From NCBI GenBank assembly GCA_965637545.1, contig OZ281496.1, positions 18,290,001 through 18,354,000 on the forward strand: 64,000 nt of DNA, given 5' to 3'. The translations under genes and the position numbers were made by a program. Position 1 is the stretch's first letter. Every line of letters starts with the position of its first letter. Shown here one piece after another: positions 364-18,800 of the stretch. The notes beneath the pieces are model-generated. The model ran no database searches. It worked only from the letters and a program-made list of their open reading frames with translations, and had not been told where the DNA came from. Origin of the DNA: Phallusia mammillata. Lineage: Eukaryota.

Positions 364-1342
364 ACGGGCTATCAATAATGAATAAGTGTGCATCACAACA
401 ATCTGTATCATCTGTTGGTTTTTGTTCTTAAAAGGACCTTACATTAGTTAAAACACAGTTAGTTTTGTTGCGGTGGCCATTTATGCAGCAAAATAAATTG
501 GGTGTCACATTTTTTGCGTGGATTAATTATGATAGTGTACAAATAATCCGCACCTGAAATTTTGAAGGTACTGCAACTGGCGCTAGATGCGTAACCTGCT
601 TCGTGTTAGGGCAGTAAACTCAACGATGGCGAAATAACCACGACGGCTTGCATAAGGTTGAAAATAAGACAACATAAGGACTCAAGTCAAAAACAAGAAC
701 GTTCCTCGAAATTGTGACAATATATTGTTCTGAGACATTGCTCTTCAAGGACAAATCTTAAAAAGGAGGACGGTATGGAAACTCTGTGCATAAGTCACAT
801 ACGTACCCATTATGACGTCATAAGGACAGTTAAAGAACACATTAAACAGTTTAAAGCACTACACTAATGTCTCGATTTAAATCTAAGTTAATCGGTCACA
901 CTTCACTTAAAAATGACTTCCGAATACTTGTAATATACCCAGTTGCACTTCTATGCACCTTTAGACATATTAAACACGCTTAAAAATGAGAACATAAAAC
1001 ACATTGAACATAACTGTTGAATAACAAGGGCTGTACAAGCCATCGGCTAGAGGTTCCACAACTAACAATTCAACAAGTTCACCATTGCTGTAACGTAAGC
1101 ATTATATGGTTTCACTACAAACATTTATACGCAAAGAACATAAGCTAAATTCACTTAGTTTGACTGCAAAACCTAGCAACAAACGCAGTTTGAAAAAAAA
1201 ACGTGGAGTCAAAGCACAAGATCACTCGCGGATGAATATTTCAAACTATCACGAAAAACATTAACCAGTCAAGTATTTTTCGCTGTAACAGGTAACTTAT
1301 TTACAAAAAAGTAAAAAGTAAGTTTTATCGTATGTTTGTGGT

Positions 1343-2141
1343 TGTCACAAATATTCTAGACCGCCCCATGACAATATCCCACGACCCAGTTACAACGCGT
1401 CACGGACAATTTCAGTACGTCTAGAGCAGTGGTTCCCAACCAGGGCCCATGGCCACCCAGGGGGGCCACGAACTGTGTTCCAGGGGGCCACGGGTGTAGA
1501 TTCACAAGAAACACCCACTAAAACTCATTTTCTTTTTAACTTTATTCCCTAATTCAATCGACTATTTCACATACTATTTGTCTATATTGAGGTTTATCAT
1601 GATTGCGGATTCTTGGTTAGTCTATTCGTCCTGTTTAAAGCCGAAATTAGTAACGAATTCCAACACAAGATTGCCTTTTACATTTTTCAAGGGGGCCACA
1701 GGTCCTTCAGGGTTACTTAAAGGGGGCCACAAGGCCAAAAAGTGACTTTTAGGGGGCCTCGGTTCACCAAAGGTTGGGAACCACTGGTCTAGAGTCTATC
1801 GTTACAGGCGCTATTGTGTTGTAATTGTCATAGTGTGCCAGTTTTATCGTGCGCCGTTGCCCGTTGCAGTGTCCATTGTTTTATCTAAAGGAAATCGTCA
1901 TAGCGAATTAGCGCCTTCGACCATCTAACGATTAAAGAGTACATAACAGAGAAGAAGAGGGAGATAACTGCGAAGTAGTGTTGGATTGTTATTTTTGTTG
2001 TTTTGGCTACGTGTGGTTGAACGTAAATAAATGTAAAAGGAAAGGTTTGCTGCCGATCAAAGTACACGAGCGTTAGCTGTTAAGGAACTTCCGATAGTTA
2101 GTCCCAATCTTTCGCGTACCCGTGAAAACGGGAACGTGACA
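1343..2141 (+). repeat. Left LTR (TG...CA), interrupted by a hAT MITE
   Basis: TGTCACAAAT...GGGAACGTGACA; homologous to LTRs at 3605-4089, 7159-7637 and 9282-9759. Confidence 0.85.
1427..1786. mobile_element. hAT (Charlie/Buster-type) MITE inserted in the LTR
   Basis: TIR CAGTGGTTCCCAACC / GGTTGGGAACCACTG; 8-bp TSD GTCTAGAG on both sides. Confidence 0.9.
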
Positions 2142-2143
2142 TC

Positions 2144-2161
2144 TGGGGGCTCGTCCGGGAT
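2144..2161 (+). promoter_or_regulatory. Primer-binding site complementary to the tRNA-Pro 3' end
   Basis: TGGGGGCTCGTCCGGGAT 2 nt after the LTR end; mirror copy at 3585-3602 (-) and a related copy just inside the LTR at 9282. Confidence 0.85.
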
Positions 2162-2207
2162 CTGACTCAAAACGCGAAGTTGAACATTAACCCCTGTAAG
2201 ATCGGCA

Positions 2208-2561
2208 ATGGCGTCTGGATTGCAGTACGTGGAATTAGGGAAGCAATTGGGGCTCGTTGACGAAGAGCTACGCAAGTATGTGAAGAAGCAGATGAAAGAA
2301 GAACGCGACACTGCGCAGAGGAGACGCGATGCAGAGGCTGCGCAGTGGAGACGCGATGCCGAAGTTGCGCAGAGGAGACGCGATGCCGAGGTTGCGGTTG
2401 CGCGGAGAAGACTCGAAGCTACGAAGAGAAAACTTGAGGCCGAACGGGAATTTCGCGAGCACGAACTGGCTATGAAGAAGCTTGAATTGGAAGCTAAGCG
2501 CCGCCGTGCAGAAAAAACAAAGAGGGTTACAACAAATGCAGGCAAGTGTCCAGGTTTTTAA
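2208..2561 (+). pseudogene. Truncated gag N-terminus (coiled-coil, RRRDAE repeats)
   Basis: ORF MASGLQYVELGKQLGLVDEELRKYV... directly after the PBS; ends at the junction with the inverted half. Confidence 0.7.
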
Positions 2562-2571
2562 ACCTTTTAAC

Positions 2572-3538
2572 CTCGCGCAATCTAGCACAAATGTTCCCAC
2601 AACTCATCAGTGCCACCCGAGAGTCAAATGCCCTCACTGAAAGTATTGCTTCCTCTATCCAATGTTTTCTTTCTTTGCCTTTTTCTTGTTTACTTCTGCA
2701 CTTGAACAACTTGTGGAACTCCCCCGGAAGTGACATGGCTTCGAATCTCGGAAGGATGATTCCGCAAAGTGGTCACCTGACTGTATTGGTTGTTCCATCT
2801 GTCGGCGGGTTGTCATGGACGACAGGACACGGATAAATGCGCTTTGAACGGTGTTTTCACTGGTCGCTAAGTCAAGATTGTCATCAGTTGGTTGCTCGAG
2901 AATCTGTTGAAACGAAGAAACAAACTTTCTCTCATCCGGCATTTGCATTTCACTTGTCTCGTGATCCTGAAATAGTTTCTTTCCTTGGTTATCGACGATA
3001 AGCTGGGTCATGGCGTTCGGTAACTTCGCTTCTTGTGTCAAAGAAACCGATTTGCTTCTCTTCATCATCTTCAGTTCCATTGTGATGACATCCTGCGCTG
3101 ACTCTGCTTCGCTCTCATCGGCGCTCGTCTGAATTGTTGCGGTTTGTTCCGTCGATTGTTGAGTCACAGGAATCGACAATTCCTTGCCAGACATCTGTAC
3201 TAACTTTTCGATGCAACCCTGCGAAAAATCCCTGTCTTCCTCGTCTAGCGGGACATGGGTTTCGACGTTTCGCTCCACTGTTGTACTGATTCCCGCCCTC
3301 TCCTGAGACTTTGTCACAAGCCGTTGACTCCTCGATTCTATTCGGCCTCGAGTCTTCTCTTCGTAGCCTCGAGTCTTTTCTTCGTAGCTTCAAGTCTTCT
3401 CTGCACAACCTCGGCATCGCGTCTCCTCTGTGTAGTGTCGCGTTCATCTTTCATCTGCTTCTTCACATACTTGCGTAGCTCTTCGTCAACGAGCCCCAAT
3501 TGCTTCCCTAATTTCACGTACTGCAATCCAGACGCCAT
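2572..3538 (-). pseudogene. Disrupted gag-derived ORF of the right (minus) half
   Basis: MASGLQYVKLGKQLG... (3538) with a stop at 3338, then 2655-3317, homologous to the 566-aa ORF at 7515-9215. Confidence 0.7.
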
Positions 3539-3604
3539 TGCCGATCTTACAGGGGTTAATGTTCAACTTCGCGTTTTGAGTCAGATCCCGGACGAGCCCC
3601 CAGA

Positions 3605-4089
3605 TGTCACGTTCCCGATTTCACGGGTACGCAAAAGTTTGGGACTGACTATCGTAAGTTCCTTAACAGCTAACGCTCGTGTACTCTGATCGGCAGCAAA
3701 ACGTTTCCTTTTATATTTTTTCACGTCCAACCACACGCAATCAAAACAACAAAAACAACAAAAACAACAATCCAACACTACTTCGCAGTTATCTCTATTC
3801 CAGTCTATATCATTCCATGTTATGTTCTTTAAATCGTTAGACGGGGGCGCTGATATACCTTGCATCACAATGATCGGGAAAAAGGCGTTAACTCGTTGTG
3901 ACCATTTCCTACAGATAAAACAATGAACACCGCAACGGGCAACGGCGACGCGGAAAAACTAGCACAGTAGAACAATGACGACACAATAGCGCCTGCAACG
4001 ATAGACTCTGGACGCACAGAAATTGTCCGTGATGCGTTGTAATTGGGTCGCAGGATATTGTCAAGGGGCGGTCTAGAACATTTGTGACA
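3605..4089 (-). repeat. Right LTR, inverted relative to the left LTR
   Basis: Reverse complement reads TGTCACAAATGTTCTAGACC...GGGAACGTGACA followed by the tRNA-Pro PBS. Confidence 0.9.
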
Positions 4090-5922
4090 GTGGTTGTATT
4101 GCATTTGAAAACAAACAACGTTTTTGATGAAAATGTTTATTAACATATTTTGCGAAATAAAGCTTGTGACTTCATAAAACTTTATTATGATGGTTAAATA
4201 TAATTTTTTGGGGGGTTACCCTCTGGAGCTATGCGAGATTGTGCGGATCATACGTCTAAAATGTGCGCACTTACAATGGAAAATCCACAAACATCGCAGG
4301 TTTTTCTTTCCAATCTAGAGCGAAACTGGACTGCAAACGCCAGTTCACCAAAAATGAAAACGAAGATAGCAGCTAAAGTATCTCCAGAAAAAAAGACAGT
4401 GCTTTAAACAAATCTAACTATTTACAAGTCAAAAGATGATAATAATGAAGTGTTATAAGAAGATATAAGGTTTAAGGTGCAATATTGAATGACTTGATAG
4501 CCGGTATAAATCTGATTTCACGCTTGAGCTTTTGACACATAGCCTGTGTTGAGCTTGCACATTCCTATGTGGATTATTCATTTGTTTGATTCACTAGAAA
4601 AATAAAAAAGTAAAAAATAATTACAAAACAAAAATTTATGGTACAATATGTGACCACTGCCCGAGGGTGAAAATTATTGCTCAAGGTGTAATTTTCACAG
4701 CATCTGCAATGGTGGAGTATATACGTGGAACTTTTCACTTGATTGATTTTAAGGTGGCAAGCTGGACCACCCAGCGATACAGTTTGTATATCAAATTTGG
4801 GTGGTAATTACCATTACTACCATTTACAGCGTATACAAAGAATAAGCATCTAACAACAGTCAGGAATAAGGCATTAATTACTCTACGTCCAGTGGCGGCA
4901 CGTGCCTAAAATTACTAAATTACTGCTTTTAGTTTGAAGCCTTCGTTATTACGAAAGTATAGTCACATGCTCTCTTGTTTGTTGAAACGATTTTTTTGTA
5001 AGTTATATCTTCCAGATTCTTAACTGTTTCTTGCCGCTTGATTTGTATGAGAACTAGCTGGGTTAAAACAAAACTGTGATTTTCTCTAAAAAACTTTTGT
5101 TTTTATGTTGCTGAAAATTTCTAAATTTTTGGATTTTGCCTAAATTTCGGTAAGGCATTTTACACACATATATATGTTGTTGATTATTGCTGGCTGACAT
5201 ATTTGAATAGTAGGTGTTAGACGGCCTTTTATCCATGCGTTTTTATTCAATGATAACTGCAAAACCCATGCTGGAGCCCACTTAAATGAAAAGCAATAGT
5301 CATAATAATGTCTAATTCTTATATTTGGAAATGTCACATGCGTTTATCAAATTGGTCGGTCTTGTTATTACTGTCCACCAACAGTCCAACCGTTAACGCG
5401 TGAGCGCATATTATTTTTAAGTATTTAATCTGTTTTTTGCTTTAACAACTTAAAGAGATTAAGTTTTGCCTGCCCGTAAAGGCCCTGAGAAGTGAATCAA
5501 TTACAACTACACAAATCACTAAATTATGATCTGCTTTTAAAGACCTATCGATATTTACCTACAGTTTGGTATTTATGAACTGCAAAGTTCGGTGTGTTCG
5601 ACCAGTCGAAACTCTTGGGTAACAATCAAAGTGATAAAAAGATAACTTTTAACAGCTCTACATAAATTTTAAGAATTCAAACGTTGTGTTACAACACTTT
5701 GTATATTGTTGGTTTAGTATAATTGTGTAGTATAATAACTTACGTTTAAGACAAAACGAAAATAGTGTCCTTTTAAACACCGTGTGTAGGATACACTCGT
5801 TCTTGGTTTGTTCACAAATCCGCTTTATTACAGACTTTTACGCCGCTTTATACTATAAATCGGTCGAAAAAATTAGTCTTTACTAGAAATATTTCTATGC
5901 GGAGGTATTGCATGCTATAGAG

Positions 5923-6843: not shown

Positions 6844-9800
6844 ATGCATTTGTCTATACTGTACCGAATCTGTTTAGGTTTGACTGTCATTCTGTCACTT
6901 GTCGCCGTGTGCATGTGGAACCTTTCGGCTTTCACATCGACCGTTGCACCAAAAAAGGAGATCAACAAAGATGTTGGTAGCAAAGCTAACGATTTAACGG
7001 TAAGCGAAATTTTTGTAGGTCAAACGACAGATTTGTTGACATTAATATTTGCGAGCGTATTGTACCAGTTACTGGTAACATGCGAGTACATCAAACTCAG
7101 ACTTGTGAAGAATATTTAACATAACAAATGTATCTAAGAGCTTCCGGATAGTGAACAATGACACGTTCCCGTTTTCACGGGTACGCGAAAGATTGGGACT
7201 GACTATCGGAAGTTCCTTAACAGCTAACGCTCGTGTACTCTGATCGGCAGCAAACCTCTTTTCTTTAACATTTATTCACGTCCAACCACACGTAATCAAA
7301 ACAACAAACAAACAATCCAGCACTACTTCGCAGTTATCTCTCAGTTCTATCTTCTATATTATGTTCTGTTTTTTTTTTAAATCGTTAGATTGGGGCGCTT
7401 ATATATCTTGCATTACAATGATCGGGAAAAAGGCGTTAATTCGCTGTGACCATTTCCTACACATAAAACAATGAACTCTGCAACGGGCAACGGCGACGCG
7501 ATAAAACCGGGACACTACAACAATGATAACACAATAGCGCCTGCAACGATAGACTCCAGACGTACAGAAATTGTCCATGATCCGTGGTAATTGGGTCGCG
7601 CGATTTTGTCATAGGGCGGTCTAGAACATTTGTGACAAAACCCCGTTTTTAAAAGGAGATTTTCCTCGAACAAGAAAATCTCGCGCAATCTACGACAAAT
7701 GTTCCTGCAACTCATCAGTGCCAACCGAAGATCAAAGTTCTTGTTTGCCGAAGGTGTTGCTTTTTCCATCCACCGATTTCTTTCTTTGCTTTTTTCCTGC
7801 TTACTTCCGTACCTAAACCACGTTTGGAAATCCCTCCGAAAGCGACATGGCTTCGAATCTCGGAAGGATGACTCCGCAAATTCGTTACCTGACTGCATTT
7901 GTTGTTTCGTCTGTCGGCGGGTTGTCGTGGACGACAAGACAGGTATAAATGCGCTTTGAACGTTGCACTCACTGGTCGGCGCTAAAACGAGACTGTCATC
8001 AGTTGGTTCCTCGAAAACCTGTTGCAATGAAGAAATAGACATTCTCCTATCCAGCATTTGCAAATCAACACTGGGGCGATTCTGAACCAATTCTTGATCT
8101 TGCACATCGACGACTGTCTTTGATATGGCGCTCTGCTTCGTCGTCTTTTGTATTAAAGCAACAATCCCGCCTCCCTCTTCTGTATGTAATTGCATATTGA
8201 CCTGTTCCTGCGACAACTCTGCGTCTTGCCCCCTGGTCTTCGTTCGAATCGTGGTGTTCTTCTCTGTCGCTTGTTGTGTCACAGAACCTGACTCTTCTTT
8301 GTCAAACATCTCCACTTCCGTTTCAATCCGACCCTGCGACAAATCCTTAGTTTGCTCGTCTGGCTGTTTGACGTTTTTCTCCACTGAATCGCAGATTTCC
8401 GTCCTTTTAACAGAAGTTGTCACAAGACGTTTATTCATTGGCTCTGGAATGCGCTCTTGTTCGTCTTCTACCATGTGGACACGATCCACGTCGACTTTCT
8501 TCTTTACACAAATTTGGGACGACATAGTACTGTTTTCCCTCGGAAAAGCCGCAAGCAACTGCCTGTCTACGGCATTTATCTCATACATGCGTGTCGGTTG
8601 CTCTTGACACTTGCCTGCATTAGTTGTCACCCCGTTCGTTTTTTCTCTACGGCAGTTCCTCGTTTCCAACTCAAGCTTCTTCATAGCCAGTTCGTGCTCG
8701 CGGATTTGTTGTCGCTCTTTCCTTCCGGCCTCGAGTCTTTTCTTCATAGCCTCGTGTCTTCCCTTCGTAGCTTCGAGTCTTCTATGCGCAGCCGCAACCT
8801 CGGCATCGAGTTTCCTCTGCGCAGCCTCGGCATCACGTCTCCTCCGCGCAGCCTCATACTCGGCATCGCGTTTTCTCTGTGCAGTCTCGACATCGCATCT
8901 CCTCTGCGCAGCCTCGGCATCGCGTCTTCTCTGTGCAGTCTCGACATCGCATCTCCTCTGCGCAGCCTCGACATCGCATCTCCTCTGCGCAGCCTCGGCA
9001 TCACGTTTTCTCTGTGCAGTCTCGACATCGCATCTCCTCTGCGCAGCCTCGGCATCGCGTCTTCTCTGCGCAGCCTCGGCATCTTGTTGGAACTTTTGCT
9101 CTTCAAGTTCATGCTCACGGTCATGTTTCACCTGCTCCTCCACATGCTTGCGTAGCTCTTCATCAACATATTCCAATTGCTTTCCAATATCCAGATATTG
9201 TCTTGCAGACGCCATTGCCGATCTTACAGGGGTTAGTGTTTAACTTCGCGTTTTTAAGTCAGTTCCCGACGAGCCCCCAGATGTCACGTTCCCGTTTTCA
9301 CGGGTACGCGAAAGATTGGGACTGACTATCGGAAGTTCCTTAACAGCTAACGCTCATGTACTCTGATCGGCAGCAAACCTCTTTTCTTTAACATTTATTC
9401 ACGTCCAACCACACGTAATCAAAACAACAAACAAACAATCCAACACTACTTCGCAGTTATCTCTCAGTTCTATCTTCTATATTATGTTCTGTTTTTTTTT
9501 AAATCGTTAGATTGGGGCGCTTATATATCTTGCATTACAATGATCGGGAAAAAGGCGTTAATTCGCTGTGACCATTTCCTACAAATGAAACAATGAACTC
9601 TGCAACGGGCAACGGCGACGCGATAAAACCGGGACACTACAACAATGATAACACAATAGCGCCTGCAACGATAGACTCCAGACGTACAGAAATTGTCCAT
9701 GATCCGTGGTAATTGAGTCGCGTGATTTTGTCATAGGGCGGTCTAGAACATTTGTGAGAAACAAATTATTGCAAACGTTTTAATTATCTGCTGTACGCAT

Positions 9801-15800: not shown

Positions 15801-18800
15801 CCTGAGCTGCGATCATAAACTTGACAAAGTTAAAACGTGATCTATTATTGTGATTACAGAAATGCAAACATAGTAAAAAAGTCAAGGGTTACCACCTACA
15901 AATTTGAGCTGTAAAATAATTTTGACACACTGAAGACAAAAGGTAACAAATGTTCTCTTATCCTATGAAAAAACTCTTAATTTTAGCATGAACTAATACG
16001 AACGTGCTAAAGCCAAACTGGTTGATACAGAAGAAAGTGCTCTGAAAGAACACCTACACTTTATTTTTAAAGTATTGCATTGCACATGCAAACAACACAT
16101 CGTTTTACTTTTATTCACACAAATACTACATTGTTACTCAGCCAAATAGCCTGAACCGTACCCGAACCCGCGAACAGTGTACAGTCAAAATTCATTGGGA
16201 GTTAGGCAATGAAGATGATGGATAGAATGAAAATTAAACGAAAGGGGATTTGAACCAGTTTATAAAATCAGAACAAAACCCGAATCCACAAACATAGATT
16301 TATTAAAACCTGAACCGAACCCGAAACCGTAAAAACAAAGTGAACCCGAACCGAACTGAACCTGAACCGATATGACAAGCGGTTAGACTCCCTGTTTAAG
16401 AATGAATTGGCGTATAATTAAATTCTGAACACTTTGGTTGGCTTATACTGTGCATTATGGTCAGGGTTTTGTCTTTTACTATGTCTGTTGTTTGGCGGTC
16501 ATCTTGATACGGTGTATTGTTGTCTTGGGCATAGCCATCACGAATGTGCTTTCGGTATGTATCTGATTGCGGCTATGTGGCAAGTGATTGCCTGTTAAGT
16601 GCACATTTGTGTTACTACAAGTGTTTCTGCACGTTCTATGANNNNNNNNNNNNNNNNNNNNNNNNNNNNNNNNNNNNNNNNNNNNNNNNNNNNNNNNNNN
16701 NNNNNNNNNNNNNNNNNNNNNNNNNNNNNNNNNNNNNNNNNNNNNNNNNNNNNNNNNNNNNNNNNNNNNNNNNNNNNNNNNNNNNNNNNNNNNNNNNNNN
16801 NNNNNNNNNNNNNNNNNNNNNNNNNNNNNNNNNNNNNNNNNCCCTGTTTCCACACAATTGTGCAATCGTAAGAAAATGTGATGCAACAATTGGAAGAGCC
16901 GGTTCAACTATAAATCGAACTTTTCATGTTCTGTGCGACGTTTTATGAAGCGAAATTTATAAATTTAACCTGTAAAAAGTGTAATTTATTGCGCTTCTTT
17001 ATAATCCTTTATCATAAATGTCCAATTTTGAGCCTGAATTACGTTTTTCTTTCATTGGAATTTGTAAATTCAGCTGTAGTCTTGGTTAGGCTTCGAACAA
17101 AGTTGTTTTAGCATATATCTGATAAAGTTTCAGCGGTTTCCAGCAAATCCTGTGTTTGCCCGCAATAAAAACTTGGTCGGTTTTCGGTTATAGTAAAAAT
17201 TCGAGCTTGCGCGTTGTTATATTTAGATTGGCTAATCGAATATATTGTGTTTCTTTACATTGCATTGATACCCTGGTTGTGTTGTGTGTGGAGCGGGGAG
17301 AAATGGTGCAATCAAATACCAGGGGCACGTTGAGACCTGCTCCAATCGTATGCATAAAACCGCATGAATTCGGTTGTTGAAAAGTGTATTTGAAACAAAC
17401 GCTATGCATTCCGCCAAAGCTGTATTTGCCGAATTGAACCTAAACAGTAAACGACGTTATCTCTTTGTTACATAACTAACAGAGGCGAATTTTACCGGAC
17501 GTGTTGTGTCACTTTAGGGTTGCTAATATTGGTTCCATGTCGCGAGTTAGGGTCATGTAGCCATCCCTGAGAGTGAAAAACGTAACACTGCAAAATTAGT
17601 TTTCCGGAAAAATCAAAACTTTTTGAGTCATCTAATTGAAGTGGTTAAATTCTGTTTGGGCCATATTTTTGTGGTGAATGACACGTAAATTTGATAGGTC
17701 AGGTCTCAACATGCCCCTGGTATTTGATTGCATCATTTCTCCCCGCTCCACACACAACACAACCAGGGTATCAATGCAATGTAAAGAAACACAATATTAT
17801 TCGATTAGCCAATCTAAATATAACAACGCGCAAGCTCGAATTTTTACTATAACCGAAAACCGACCAAGTTCTTATTGCGGGCAAACACAGGATTGCTGGA
17901 AACCGGCTGAAACTTTATCAGATATATGCTAAAACAACTTTGTTCGAAGCTTAACCAAGATTACAGCTGAATTTACAAATTCCAATGAAAGAAAAACGCA
18001 ATTCAGGCTCAAAATTGGACATTTATGAAAAAGGATTATAAAGAAGCGCAATAAATTACACTTTTTACAGGTTAAATTTGTAAAATTTCGCTTCATAAAA
18101 CGTCGCACAGAACATGAAAAGTTCGATTTATAGTTGAACCGGCTCTTCCAATTGTTGCATCACATTTTCTTACGATTGCACCATTGTGTGGAAACAGGGC
18201 TCTCAAGAGAAGAAACAAATATGCTGGTACAAGTCAATTTCTGCCCCCCTTCACTAAAGTCATGTCTATAAAAGTTTATTCAGTTGGGGAATAGTTTATG
18301 CTCCGAGGATGTAATGAACAAGCATTTAATACGTTTATGCGTCCACGAAAACAAACAAAAGCAGGTTGGCCATTGGAAATAAGTGCGTAGAGATTCTTTG
18401 AAAAATGCTTTTAATTTGACAAATACAAAGACAGAACACCAACCTCTTCAAATGTAAACGTCTTCACATACACACACACACACATAGCTGTCGCTTTATA
18501 AACTTTAGCAAAATGATCCAAAGAGGTATCTCGCTTATAGTTACAAAGCTGTGACCAAATCAAATACGTGTAACAAATACCGTTTTAACGTCATAGAACG
18601 TGCAGAAACACTTGTAGTAACACAAGTGTGCACTTAACAGGCAATCGCTTGCCACATAGCCGCAATCAGATACATACCGAAAGCACATTCGTGATGGCTA
18701 TGCCCAAGACAACAATACACCTTATCAAGATGACCGCCAAACAACAGACATAGTAAAAGACAAAACCCTGACCATAATGCACAGCATATACCAACCAAAG

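Follow-up and report, generated by a model that had tools for sequence, protein, structure and literature searches.

A retrotransposon insertion with two outward-facing U3 tips in Phallusia mammillata: probable concerted integration of DNA from two templates

Introduction

How does an element of an LTR-retrotransposon family come to carry a U3 tip at each of its two ends and to sit within a single target-site duplication? The question is raised by positions 1343 to 4089 of the window, that is, of the whole stretch of DNA that was analysed (64,000 nt of Phallusia mammillata, contig OZ281496.1, 18,290,001-18,354,000, forward strand). A preliminary description had proposed a bimolecular U3-U3 concerted integration, and its components are considered below together with the competing explanations.

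Results

Architecture of the element

Direct reading of the 2747-bp element places a U3 tip at each end, with the LTRs inverted (TGTCAC.../...GTGACA); TGTCACAAAT is read from 1343 and ATTTGTGACA up to 4089. Each outer tip is an exact U3 end that meets host DNA at TG/CA, and GTGGT is read directly at 1338-1342 and at 4090-4094, flanking both sides as previously described. The left-arm LTR (1343-2141, + strand) opens with its U3 tip TGTCAC at 1343 and closes with the U5 end GTGACA at 2136-2141, and the right-arm LTR (3605-4089, - strand, 485 nt) has its U3 tip at 4089. Inward of each LTR there is TC and then the same 18-nt sequence TGGGGGCTCGTCCGGGAT, that is, a primer-binding site (PBS) 2 nt past the LTR, matched at 2144-2161 (+) and at 3585-3602 (-), which is putatively of the tRNA-Pro type, by analogy with the MLV site. 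The left arm continues with the first 347 nt of an ORF (2208-2554, +, ATG at 2208), in agreement with the earlier estimate of about 350 nt of coding sequence, and the right-arm internal region (2554-3584, -) runs from a remnant of the PPT, TTTAAAAAC at 2554-2562 (-), through a frameshifted ORF back to an ATG at 3538. The arms are unequal in length, 1212 nt on the left versus 1536 nt on the right.

The left LTR also houses a hAT-like MITE of 360 bp (1427-1786), absent from the preliminary description and bordered by the 8-bp duplication GTCTAGAG at 1419-1426 and 1787-1794. More than 1000 candidate copies of this MITE occur across the genome, the best being 97% identical. Its insertion into the LTR postdates integration of the element; once the MITE and a single copy of its duplication are subtracted, 431 nt of left-arm LTR remain.

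The family and its regular copies

A regular member at 7159-9759 (- strand), used as reference, has direct LTRs 98.7% identical to each other, a PPT and an intact ORF of 566 aa (7518-9215, -). Its 5-bp duplication was read at both ends (7154-7158 and 9760-9764; AACAA on the + strand, TTGTT on that of the element), bearing out the earlier view that this length is typical of the family. Other regular insertions likewise show 5-bp duplications of varied sequence (13 perfect and three with 4/5 matches), the target 5-mers having only a weak GT..AC bias, and in nine copies a conserved ...TTTTAAAAACGGGGTTG directly precedes the 3' LTR, constituting the PPT. The PBS and ATG noted earlier inward of each LTR are present in the aberrant element; the 566-aa ORF gave no Pfam match above threshold, and its identity as gag is putative. 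As this is the sole ORF of the family element, no gag/pol coding capacity was found in it, neither RT nor integrase, and the enzymes must therefore act in trans.

The family is thus a small non-autonomous LTR retrotransposon of about 2.1-2.6 kb. Apart from aberrant products, it comprises ordinary copies with direct LTRs, PBS and PPT, solo LTRs and LTR-int-LTR-int-LTR arrays within a single duplication, and it clusters locally (three copies within 10 kb of the window). Two direct LTRs with TG...CA tips are found in the regular copies but not at 1343-4089, which is an aberrant product of the family rather than a regular member. A DIRS-like retroelement was considered and rejected on account of the target-site duplication, the lack of a recombinase ORF and the direct LTRs of the regular copies.

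A single integration event

An uninterrupted paralogous host site is located 274 kb away (C3:18564526-18564532), where the flanks abut around a single GTAGT. This comparison is with a paralogue within the same genome, rather than with an allelic or orthologous site, and this paralogue, 82-86% identical, aligns across the insertion point at 82% identity without extra DNA, a 3-nt indel adjoining the site. The preliminary description had called for an empty allele or orthologous site with a single GTGGT; the paralogue has contiguous flanks around its single GTAGT, so that two separate insertions followed by loss of the intervening host DNA are excluded. A chance match of 5-mers, also raised at that time, is effectively excluded: its probability is 1/674 from the base composition of the window and, as the perfect duplications of the regular members vary in sequence, about 1/300 from a hand count of repeated 5-mers among the family flanks. 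The single duplication, together with flanks that are contiguous at the paralogue, supports the origin of the element 1343-4089 from one integration event. No tRNA gene was found near the insertion.

The inner joint

Homology to the left arm extends to 2554 and that to the right arm as far as the C of ...TTTAAAAAC, placing the inner joint at 2551-2554 instead of near 2570, where the halves had been thought to meet. Inspection of this joint for microhomology revealed an overlap of 1 nt at most (G at 2554). The joint falls within the right-arm PPT, 7 nt before the expected start of the 3' LTR; this arm does lack its 3' LTR, as had been stated, but keeps most of its PPT, of which only the last 7 nt are gone.

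A 110-nt read contig from run X2 covers the joint (2492-2601) with zero differences. Both outer borders are covered by read contigs from four runs belonging to three studies, reaching just 24 nt (left) and 28 nt (right) into the element, to be compared with a bridging rule of 31 nt. An assembly artefact joining two LTR copies is thereby made extremely improbable: the arms are repeats, and short-read contigs break within them, but the inner joint was recovered from an independent run, each border was seen in three to four runs, a misjoin would create neither matching 5-mers nor contiguity of the flanks at the paralogue, and the same design is present at two more loci.

Origin of the two arms

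The divergence between the arms is a mosaic. Their U3 regions are 84% identical, with three indels (34, 10 and 9 nt), identity is 93% at 2047-2128, and it rises to 99% (2/184 differ) in a block at 2129-2312 that pairs with 3434-3617 of the other arm and spans the U5 end, PBS, leader and ORF start; past about 2350 the arms cannot be aligned. The indels agree with what had been described by eye, whereas a uniform difference of 10-15% does not fit such uneven values (49/335 in U3 vs. 2/184 in the block; Fisher p=4e-8).

The LTR tree places the right arm beside C3:10021273 and C1:11445695 (support 97/95) and the left arm in another clade (94/97) together with C8:10644487, C2:27575374, C7:23213014 and C4:16867194. 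The two LTRs are 84% identical to one another versus 89-90% to outside copies, the right-arm U3 is 94% identical to a solo LTR at C3:10021434, and positions 2349-2554 of the left arm are 97% identical to a copy at C5:13062338. An AU test against a left-plus-right sister clade gave p=0.024, a modest value obtained with a sample of copies picked as best matches to the right arm. These data support the derivation of the arms from different LTR sublineages, hence from two templates as first suggested, and the tree proposed as a check of that suggestion agrees. The 99% block, which probably reflects later gene conversion between the arms, means that they are not wholly independent.

These data bear on the snap-back alternative, in which a self-primed cDNA of one template would have inserted with identical arms that then diverged for long. 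Such an origin would fit the 184-nt stretch with just two differences and the fact that, among the sampled copies, each arm is the best match of the other over 2035-2359. It is nevertheless improbable, since the arm lengths are very unequal, the contrast between U3 and block rejects uniform neutral decay, each LTR resembles outside copies more closely than it does its counterpart, and the left part of the ORF, so close to another copy, cannot be aligned to the right arm. The different sublineages combined with the 99% block thus argue against a snap-back copy that diverged later.

Recurrence in the genome

The whole genome was scanned with one U3 pattern, yielding about 106 U3 starts. Only three outward-facing U3 pairs within 3 kb were detected, all with perfect 5-bp duplications: the one described above (1343/4089, GTGGT, 2747 bp), C1:32176824/32178961 (ACCAT, 2138 bp) and C2:18426766/18427413 (TGGAC, 648 bp), against a chance expectation of about 0.04. 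The screen proposed in the preliminary description has therefore supplied two further inverted-LTR pairs with target-site duplications. In the same genome-wide scan, there were no U5-out pairs and no inward-facing pairs within 10 kb, and a control pair 6.2 kb apart had unlike flanks.

The C1 and C2 loci, as read through pattern matches only (6-nt flanks, PBS, PPT and landmarks), likewise have exact U3 ends at the host DNA as outer tips. The plus arm of C1 reads ...AAAAACGGGGTTG, stopping exactly at the expected start of the 3' LTR, and past the PPT comes AGATGTCA, in which the U5 end plus TCT is read in reverse complement; the LTR that follows in C1 is thus whole and inverted, its U5 tip still unprocessed. 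The C1 locus contains a single PBS, and its LTRs are unlike in type (506 vs. 447 nt, with a 21-mer landmark exact in one only). An inversion product of autointegration is rejected in view of this retained TCT and of the joint at 2551-2554, which lies between ORF and PPT sequence and not at an LTR tip.

Two independent opposite insertions into the same 5 bp, followed by deletion of the 3' parts and of the middle duplication, are close to refuted. The tail-to-tail copies would form a long palindrome, readily deleted by genomes, and local clustering of the family and arms of different sublineages would also suit this course of events. However, the target 5-mers are varied apart from their weak bias, no landmark of the tRNA type exists, and three occurrences would be needed, each U3-out and never U5-out, with the deletions ending, in each of the two resolved cases, at the PPT/U3 border; moreover, C1 keeps the TCT that integrated LTRs no longer have.

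It is similarly very unlikely that the pairs are non-autonomous cut-and-paste DNA transposons with LTR-derived TIRs, mobilized by a Ginger-like, integrase-type transposase, even if the TGT...ACA tips, the long inverted ends and the 5-bp duplication recall Ginger2/Tdd (PMC2836005). The three pairs are unlike one another in size, in content and in the type of their arms, none was seen as a multi-copy unit in the scan with one U3 pattern, a transposase ORF is absent, and the rest of the family is made up of the direct-LTR copies and solo LTRs mentioned above. The double-U3 product recurs at three loci, so integrase seems to pair U3 tips repeatedly in living cells.

Discussion

The reading that we prefer, to which we assign a probability of about 0.78, is a recurrent type of event in which one concerted insertion used two U3 tips from two templates. 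Integrase would have presented two U3 tips to the target, belonging to DNA copied from two members of this small non-autonomous family: on the right (-), a cDNA extending from the 5' LTR to inside the PPT, without 3' LTR, and on the left a piece of another sublineage, made up of a 5' LTR, a PBS and 347 nt of ORF. As the U3 and U5 tips have the same six terminal bases (TGTCAC/GTGACA), integrase can accept two U3 tips as a pair. Cutting of the target with the usual 5-bp stagger would have produced the single GTGGT duplication, and the inner ends would have been joined without homology. We infer that the cDNAs without 3' LTR arise at the start site of the plus strand. Precedents come from Ty1 integrase, which in vitro inserts two separate oligonucleotide donors in a concerted manner, with U3 preferred over U5 (PMC8487063), and in yeast accepts any fragment of the TG...CA form and integrates it with 5-bp duplications (PMC2939329).

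With regard to the inner joint, host end-joining after integration of the two pieces is slightly favoured over a previous switch by reverse transcriptase, in which the growing plus strand would pass to the PPT-proximal end of the second template. The latter leads to a chimeric cDNA with two U3 tips, built in the particle and then integrated in the ordinary manner, which we regard as possible but the less probable course. Here the plus strand of one template (U3-R-U5-PBS-ORF start) would jump to the 3' end of a second plus-sense template, one ending at the RNase H cut beside the PPT, and would copy that template back to its 5' LTR. This explanation overlaps the preferred one, differing only in the maker of the inner joint, and both leave the same record; of the original proposal, the single event, the two U3 ends and the two templates stand, and its two-molecule form shares that record with the chimera.

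Several features suit a chimeric cDNA. Strands naturally end at the PPT/U3 border during reverse transcription, and this is where both resolved joints fall, the C1 joint exactly and the present one 7 nt inside the border. On its other side, the C1 joint has U5 plus TCT, an end at which run-off would naturally occur. Co-packaged RNAs would suit arms of two sublineages, the family also makes LTR-int-LTR-int-LTR arrays, a product often ascribed to strand switching, and composite elements of Ty1 have been recorded that were put down to erroneous priming and strand switching (PMC2939329). On the other hand, the joints offer no usable complementarity (1 nt at most here and none at C1, where ...GGGGTTG meets the acceptor), even if a jump from end to end can do without it; an exact U3 tip at both ends demands several non-standard transfers, and the 648-bp C2 product is not explained by this route alone.

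Older assays of two-donor integration were made with the avian and HIV systems. In two-donor concerted ('full-site') integration by retroviral and Ty1 integrases (PMC8487063), like ends on separate molecules are joined across one staggered cut, as here; those assays took place in the test tube with short oligonucleotides, whereas the present products are chromosomal, recurrent in an animal germ line and have their inner ends joined into one element. Aberrant one-end retroviral integrations, known from ASLV end mutants and from HIV when the inhibitor is suboptimal or the integrase weak (PMC5041404), are alike in that ends are defective or missing and the aberrant end may join further viral DNA in either orientation. 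In them, however, the second junction is made by host enzymes without the normal short duplication and with large host duplications, deletions or inversions, while both outer junctions here are exact and bear the 5-bp duplication of the family. Autointegration inversion circles of Ty1, SISYPHUS and retroviruses (Garfinkel 2006, as cited in PMC7197481) resemble our element, according to that citing account, in that integrase acting on retroelement DNA leaves the LTRs inverted. As outlined there, they are dead ends in which an internal target receives the processed CA ends and the duplication lies inside the element, in contrast to a chromosomal product with its duplication in host DNA and, at C1, a joint with an unprocessed U5 tip.

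Twin priming of LINE-1 (5'-inverted copies; PMC2912911) also yields an internal inversion in a single event with one target-site duplication. It nevertheless concerns a non-LTR element and target-primed reverse transcription from one RNA template, with no integrase or LTR tips. Tandem or complex elements of the LTR-int-LTR-int-LTR type are ascribed to template switching or unequal exchange; they share with our element an odd LTR layout within one duplication, but their repeats are direct and not inverted. The inverted ends of Ginger elements have been proposed to stem from two LTRs in opposite orientation (PMC2836005), and the TGT...ACA tips, long inverted ends and short duplication are similar. 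Ginger elements encode a transposase and occur as copy families, whereas the double-U3 pairs are unique and transposase-free; the opposite orientation would be made here in one step, versus two chance insertions for Ginger.

A broader view, which we offer as speculative and rather doubtful, is that cDNAs of this family regularly lose, or never gain, the 3' LTR at the plus-strand start, and that integrase pairs one-tipped cDNAs and LTR-sized duplexes in any combination. If true, the inverted U3-U3 dimers would be only the visible part of the process; some solo LTRs would have been integrated directly and some elements would have had unlike LTRs from the start, undermining both LTR-divergence dating and the rule that solo LTRs arise by recombination. 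It would also allow inverted repeats recognised by integrase to form in one step, supplying what is missing from the proposed origin of Ginger-type DNA transposons. Finally, transcription of such dimers from the left LTR would yield long hairpin RNAs that could silence the family, for which the silencing of MuDR by Mu killer offers a parallel.

Structure of the inverted element and its family

The element at 1343-4089 of the window (hereafter the inverted element) is composed of two LTR arms that face each other, with a U3 tip at both ends. On the + strand the order is GTGGT (1338-1342), TGTCACAAAT... from 1343, ...ATTTGTGACA up to 4089 and again GTGGT (4090-4094). The left arm is read directly on the + strand as an LTR (1343-2141), a TC dinucleotide, an 18-nt primer-binding site (PBS; 2144-2161) and a leader leading to the ORF start at 2208. 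The right arm is its mirror on the - strand, with the LTR at 4089-3605, the dinucleotide seen as GA, the PBS at 3602-3585 and the ORF ATG at 3538. The LTR tips form a perfect 6-bp inverted repeat (TGTCAC/GTGACA), and therefore U3 and U5 tips are alike to integrase. A 200-N assembly gap lies elsewhere in the window, at 16642-16841.

A hAT-like MITE of 360 bp (1427-1786) with an 8-bp duplication, GTCTAGAG, splits the left LTR; it is from a MITE family with more than 1000 candidate copies genome-wide. Its use as a marker of subfamily or lineage was rejected, as other copies bear different MITEs at the identical LTR site. In five other LTR copies (L038, L039, L040, L043 and L075 among the loci read) MITEs with different end sequences were found at exactly GTCTAGAG, so this octamer, at LTR positions 77-84 (window 1419-1794 with its insert), is an insertion hotspot and the MITE of the left LTR is a later event. 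Altogether, inserts of roughly 260 to 770 bp occur in six LTR copies, the 8-bp duplication being the same in all of them, and at least four kinds can be told apart by their end sequences (CAGTGGTTCCCAACC, CAGGGGTGGGCAATC, CAGGGATGGCGAACC and CAGGGGTCGCCAACC).

The arms meet at 2551-2554. Homology of the left arm to its closest relative extends to 2554 (...GTGTCCAGG), and the right arm, in the orientation of its own strand, terminates in ...TTAAAAGGTTTAAAAAC, with its last C at 2554. As nine regular copies show ...TTTTAAAAACGGGGTTG and then the 3' LTR, the right arm is complete to within 7 nt of the border between polypurine tract (PPT) and U3, and only these final 7 nt and the 3' LTR are missing from it. 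Microhomology at the joint, looked for at 2551-2554, was limited to an overlap of at most 1 nt.

A regular member of the same family is found at 7159-9759 on the - strand, with direct LTRs 98.7% identical, a PPT and an intact ORF of 566 aa that terminates within the 3' LTR, at 7518. No Pfam match above threshold was obtained for it in a scan of the ORFs; therefore, of the gag ATG reported after each LTR in the preliminary description, the ATG stands and "gag" denotes a position, not a finding. A 27-nt tandem repeat in the element ORF (8745-9128 in the regular member, 2288-2440 and 3336-3460 in the two arms) encodes a charged 9-residue repeat whose copy number differs among copies. The family is non-autonomous. 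Genome-wide, the 18-nt PBS also occurs in two or more further element types whose U5 ends are different, ACGCGACA+TC (at least nine sites) and CCGTGACA+AC (at least seven sites), and these are candidates for an autonomous partner supplying reverse transcriptase and integrase. Tandem arrays of the type LTR-int-LTR-int-LTR were also seen in this family at G000:C7:14912545-14916381 (L024, L028 and L029) and G000:C6:12136598-12140502 (L032, L034 and L036), G000 being this genome and C1, C2 and so on its chromosome-scale contigs; each array has a single 5-bp duplication, GGTTT and CTGCA, respectively, with two of its three LTRs identical and the remaining one nearly so.

A single insertion site

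A paralogue of the host flanks of the inverted element lies on the same chromosome-scale contig at a distance of 274 kb; in it the left flank, matched to its last base, abuts the right flank, matched from its first bases. Global alignment of the flanks plus one copy of the 5-mer against this uninterrupted site was continuous at 82% identity, with a single GTAGT in place of GTGGT, no extra DNA and, as the sole break beside the insertion point, a 3-nt indel just to its right. The insertion of both halves at one target site, as first proposed, is thus borne out, and there was no loss of host DNA between two separate insertion sites.

The 5-bp duplication had been regarded as typical of the family, and this also held: among the fetched copies, the 5-bp duplication was perfect in 13 insertions, with no two alike in sequence, and matched at 4/5 positions in three more; the regular member has AACAA at 7154-7158 and 9760-9764. 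About 80 more 5' flanks of the family revealed a weak GT..AC bias only. A chance match of the 5-mer is expected at approximately 1 in 300 from a hand count of repeated 5-mers among the family 5' flanks, versus 1 in 674 from the composition of the window. As no tRNA gene was found within the window, there is no position-specific targeting like that of Ty3. The left host flank (911-1258) is itself repetitive, its copies occurring genome-wide as same-strand pairs mostly 6-9 kb apart at 74-75% identity, and resembles an LTR belonging to a different, larger retroelement; the start of the inverted element is 84 bp past it.

The assembly has independent support from contigs of four public runs (three studies), which cover 1064/1095-1366 and 4062-4600, the border contigs reaching only 24 and 28 nt into the element; the inner joint is covered by one 110-nt contig (2492-2601) with zero differences. 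In the contigs of the four runs, which drop rare variants, no joint skipping 1343-4089 was detected as would be produced by an empty allele, which is weak evidence against such an allele. A contig of one run, X2, showed 27 differences at 2767-2947, a joint skipping 2615-2725 and one difference over 2948-3476; it stems either from this locus in a divergent haplotype or from a unitig path via another copy.

Origin of the two arms

Identity between the arms over LTR positions 85-485 is 84%, as compared with 89-90% between either arm and other copies. In a maximum-likelihood LTR tree, whose sample consisted of copies chosen as the best matches of the right arm, the right arm grouped with C3:10021273 and C1:11445695 (support 97/95) and the left arm with C8:10644487, C2:27575374, C7:23213014 and C4:16867194 (support 94/97); constraining the arms as one clade lowered the log-likelihood by 27 units (AU p=0.024). 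The solo LTR at C3:10021434 matches the right U3 at 94% identity, and the left part of the ORF (2349-2554), which could not be aligned with the right arm, shares 97% identity with a copy on C5. At the level of sequence, these separate affinities show the arms to derive from different templates, as had been suspected by eye.

The divergence between the arms is not even. In a block at 2129-2312, which takes in the final 13 nt of U5 and continues through TC, the PBS and the leader into the ORF for 105 nt, only 2/184 positions differ between the arms, versus 49/335 in U3 (p=4e-8); this excludes uniform decay from initially identical arms. The block is not simply conserved, because over the wider stretch 2035-2359, block included, the identity of the other sampled copies to the left arm is only 87-92%. 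The simplest explanation is that the inverted arms later underwent gene conversion with each other; alternatively, the block could have been inherited from recombinant source elements.

Further outward-facing U3 pairs in the genome

A scan of the 240-Mb genome with a U3-start pattern gave 106-107 sites, among which three outward-facing pairs lie less than 3 kb apart, the inverted element included, where random placement expects about 0.04. The other two also have duplications: the C1 pair (C1:32176824(+)/32178961(-), 2138 bp) and the C2 pair (C2:18426766(+)/18427413(-), 648 bp). When five flank bases were added to the pattern, the C1 pair showed ACCAT at its left and the complement of ATGGT at its right, and the C2 pair TGGAC and the complement of GTCCA, in both cases a perfect direct 5-bp duplication. 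No inward-facing (U5-out) pair less than 10 kb apart was found among the same U3 starts, and the only other opposite-strand pair, on C6, is 6.2 kb apart with unlike flanks, one member being a solo LTR with its own duplication. Double-U3 products thus amount to roughly 3 of about 80 insertion events. Separately, exact U5-PBS junctions face each other 8.3 kb apart at C2:7344821(+) and 7353118(-), with no match to the U3-start pattern nearby; these may belong to one more outward-U3 pair, from a larger family related to this one, or may be two copies that inserted independently.

The C1 and C2 pairs were characterised by short landmark patterns and DNA-search tables. The C1 pair has a single PBS, in the plus arm and 506 nt from the tip, as in the regular members of that subfamily. 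Its PPT landmark, GAAAATCTCCTTTTAAAAACGGGGTTG, is followed by AGATGTCA instead of TGTCAC, and AGATGTCA is the reverse complement of the U5 end plus TCT, where TC is the spacer and T the first PBS base, which pairs with the terminal A of the tRNA. From AGATGTCA to the right tip there are 447 nt, so the right piece is a whole inverted LTR, which, as read from these landmarks, keeps the unprocessed U5 tip of a linear cDNA, placed exactly at the expected start of the 3' LTR. As an integrated LTR has lost the TCT, a copy that had already integrated cannot have given rise to this joint, whose source was free cDNA. The C1 LTRs are unequal in length, and a 21-mer landmark exact in the inverted LTR is missing (more than one mismatch) from the other C1 LTR and from the regular members of its subfamily; the C1 arms are probably heterologous too. 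For the C2 pair, the patterns for PBS, PPT and two LTR motifs gave no match, and the locus was unscored in the U3 DNA search.

Proposed mechanism of double-U3 integration

These structures show single integrase events that used two U3 tips. One partner was a cDNA that lacked the 3' LTR and stopped at the plus-strand start site or beside it, and the second could be any piece with a free U3 tip: LTR, PBS and 347 nt in the inverted element, a whole LTR in the C1 pair and probably short LTR pieces in the C2 pair. Other routes to inverted arms were rejected: inversion via recombination between inverted copies would leave the structure of each element intact; a break followed by fold-back duplication would give a mirrored flank, whereas here the flanks represent opposite sides of a single site; and autointegration circles would hold a processed CA end at the joint.

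Within the cDNA, the 5' LTR would become double-stranded first, and a natural discontinuity of the plus strand would lie at the PPT/U3 border, so molecules with a U3 tip only should exist. If the U3 tip is made blunt and the U5 tip requires removal of three bases, as the arrangement PPT...TTG|TGTCAC suggests, U3 tips would also be used more readily. The joining of the inner ends could be explained by host end-joining of the two integrated pieces or by a strand switch of reverse transcriptase before integration.

Significance

The synapsis by integrase of two like ends of separate DNAs has been known for decades in vitro and, to our knowledge, only from the test tube; a search of the open-access literature brought up no report of inverted-LTR insertions that arose in vivo and have a normal duplication. 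In vitro, Ty1 integrase carries out concerted insertion of two separate donors with a preference for U3 (PMC8487063), and in yeast any TG...CA fragment can serve as its substrate, with 5-bp duplications at the insertion (PMC2939329). One-ended aberrant retroviral integrations lack the normal duplication, unlike the inverted element (PMC5041404), and autointegration inversion circles also differ from it in joining processed ends to internal targets (PMC7197481). By outcome, its closest analogue is LINE-1 twin priming, although the chemistry differs.

Because the tips are exact, the duplications normal, the arms from different templates and the three cases independent within one family, with no U5-U5 counterpart, the data indicate that like-end pairing by integrase occurs in vivo and is biased towards U3. 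They also point to the plus-strand start site as a weak point of reverse transcription, since one joint lies at the PPT/U3 border, with an unprocessed U5 tip opposite, and another a few bases off. A chromosomal germ-line record is evidence of a different kind from test-tube assays, and it provides concrete molecules to seek in particle cDNA. It also calls for caution in LTR-based dating and in annotation, as double-U3 objects are easily misread as DNA transposons. In the paper defining the Ginger transposons, their inverted ends were proposed to come from two LTRs by chance in opposite orientation (PMC2836005), an arrangement that arises in one step in the double-U3 process. Double-U3 integration is a plausible one-step origin for terminal inverted repeats recognised by integrase.
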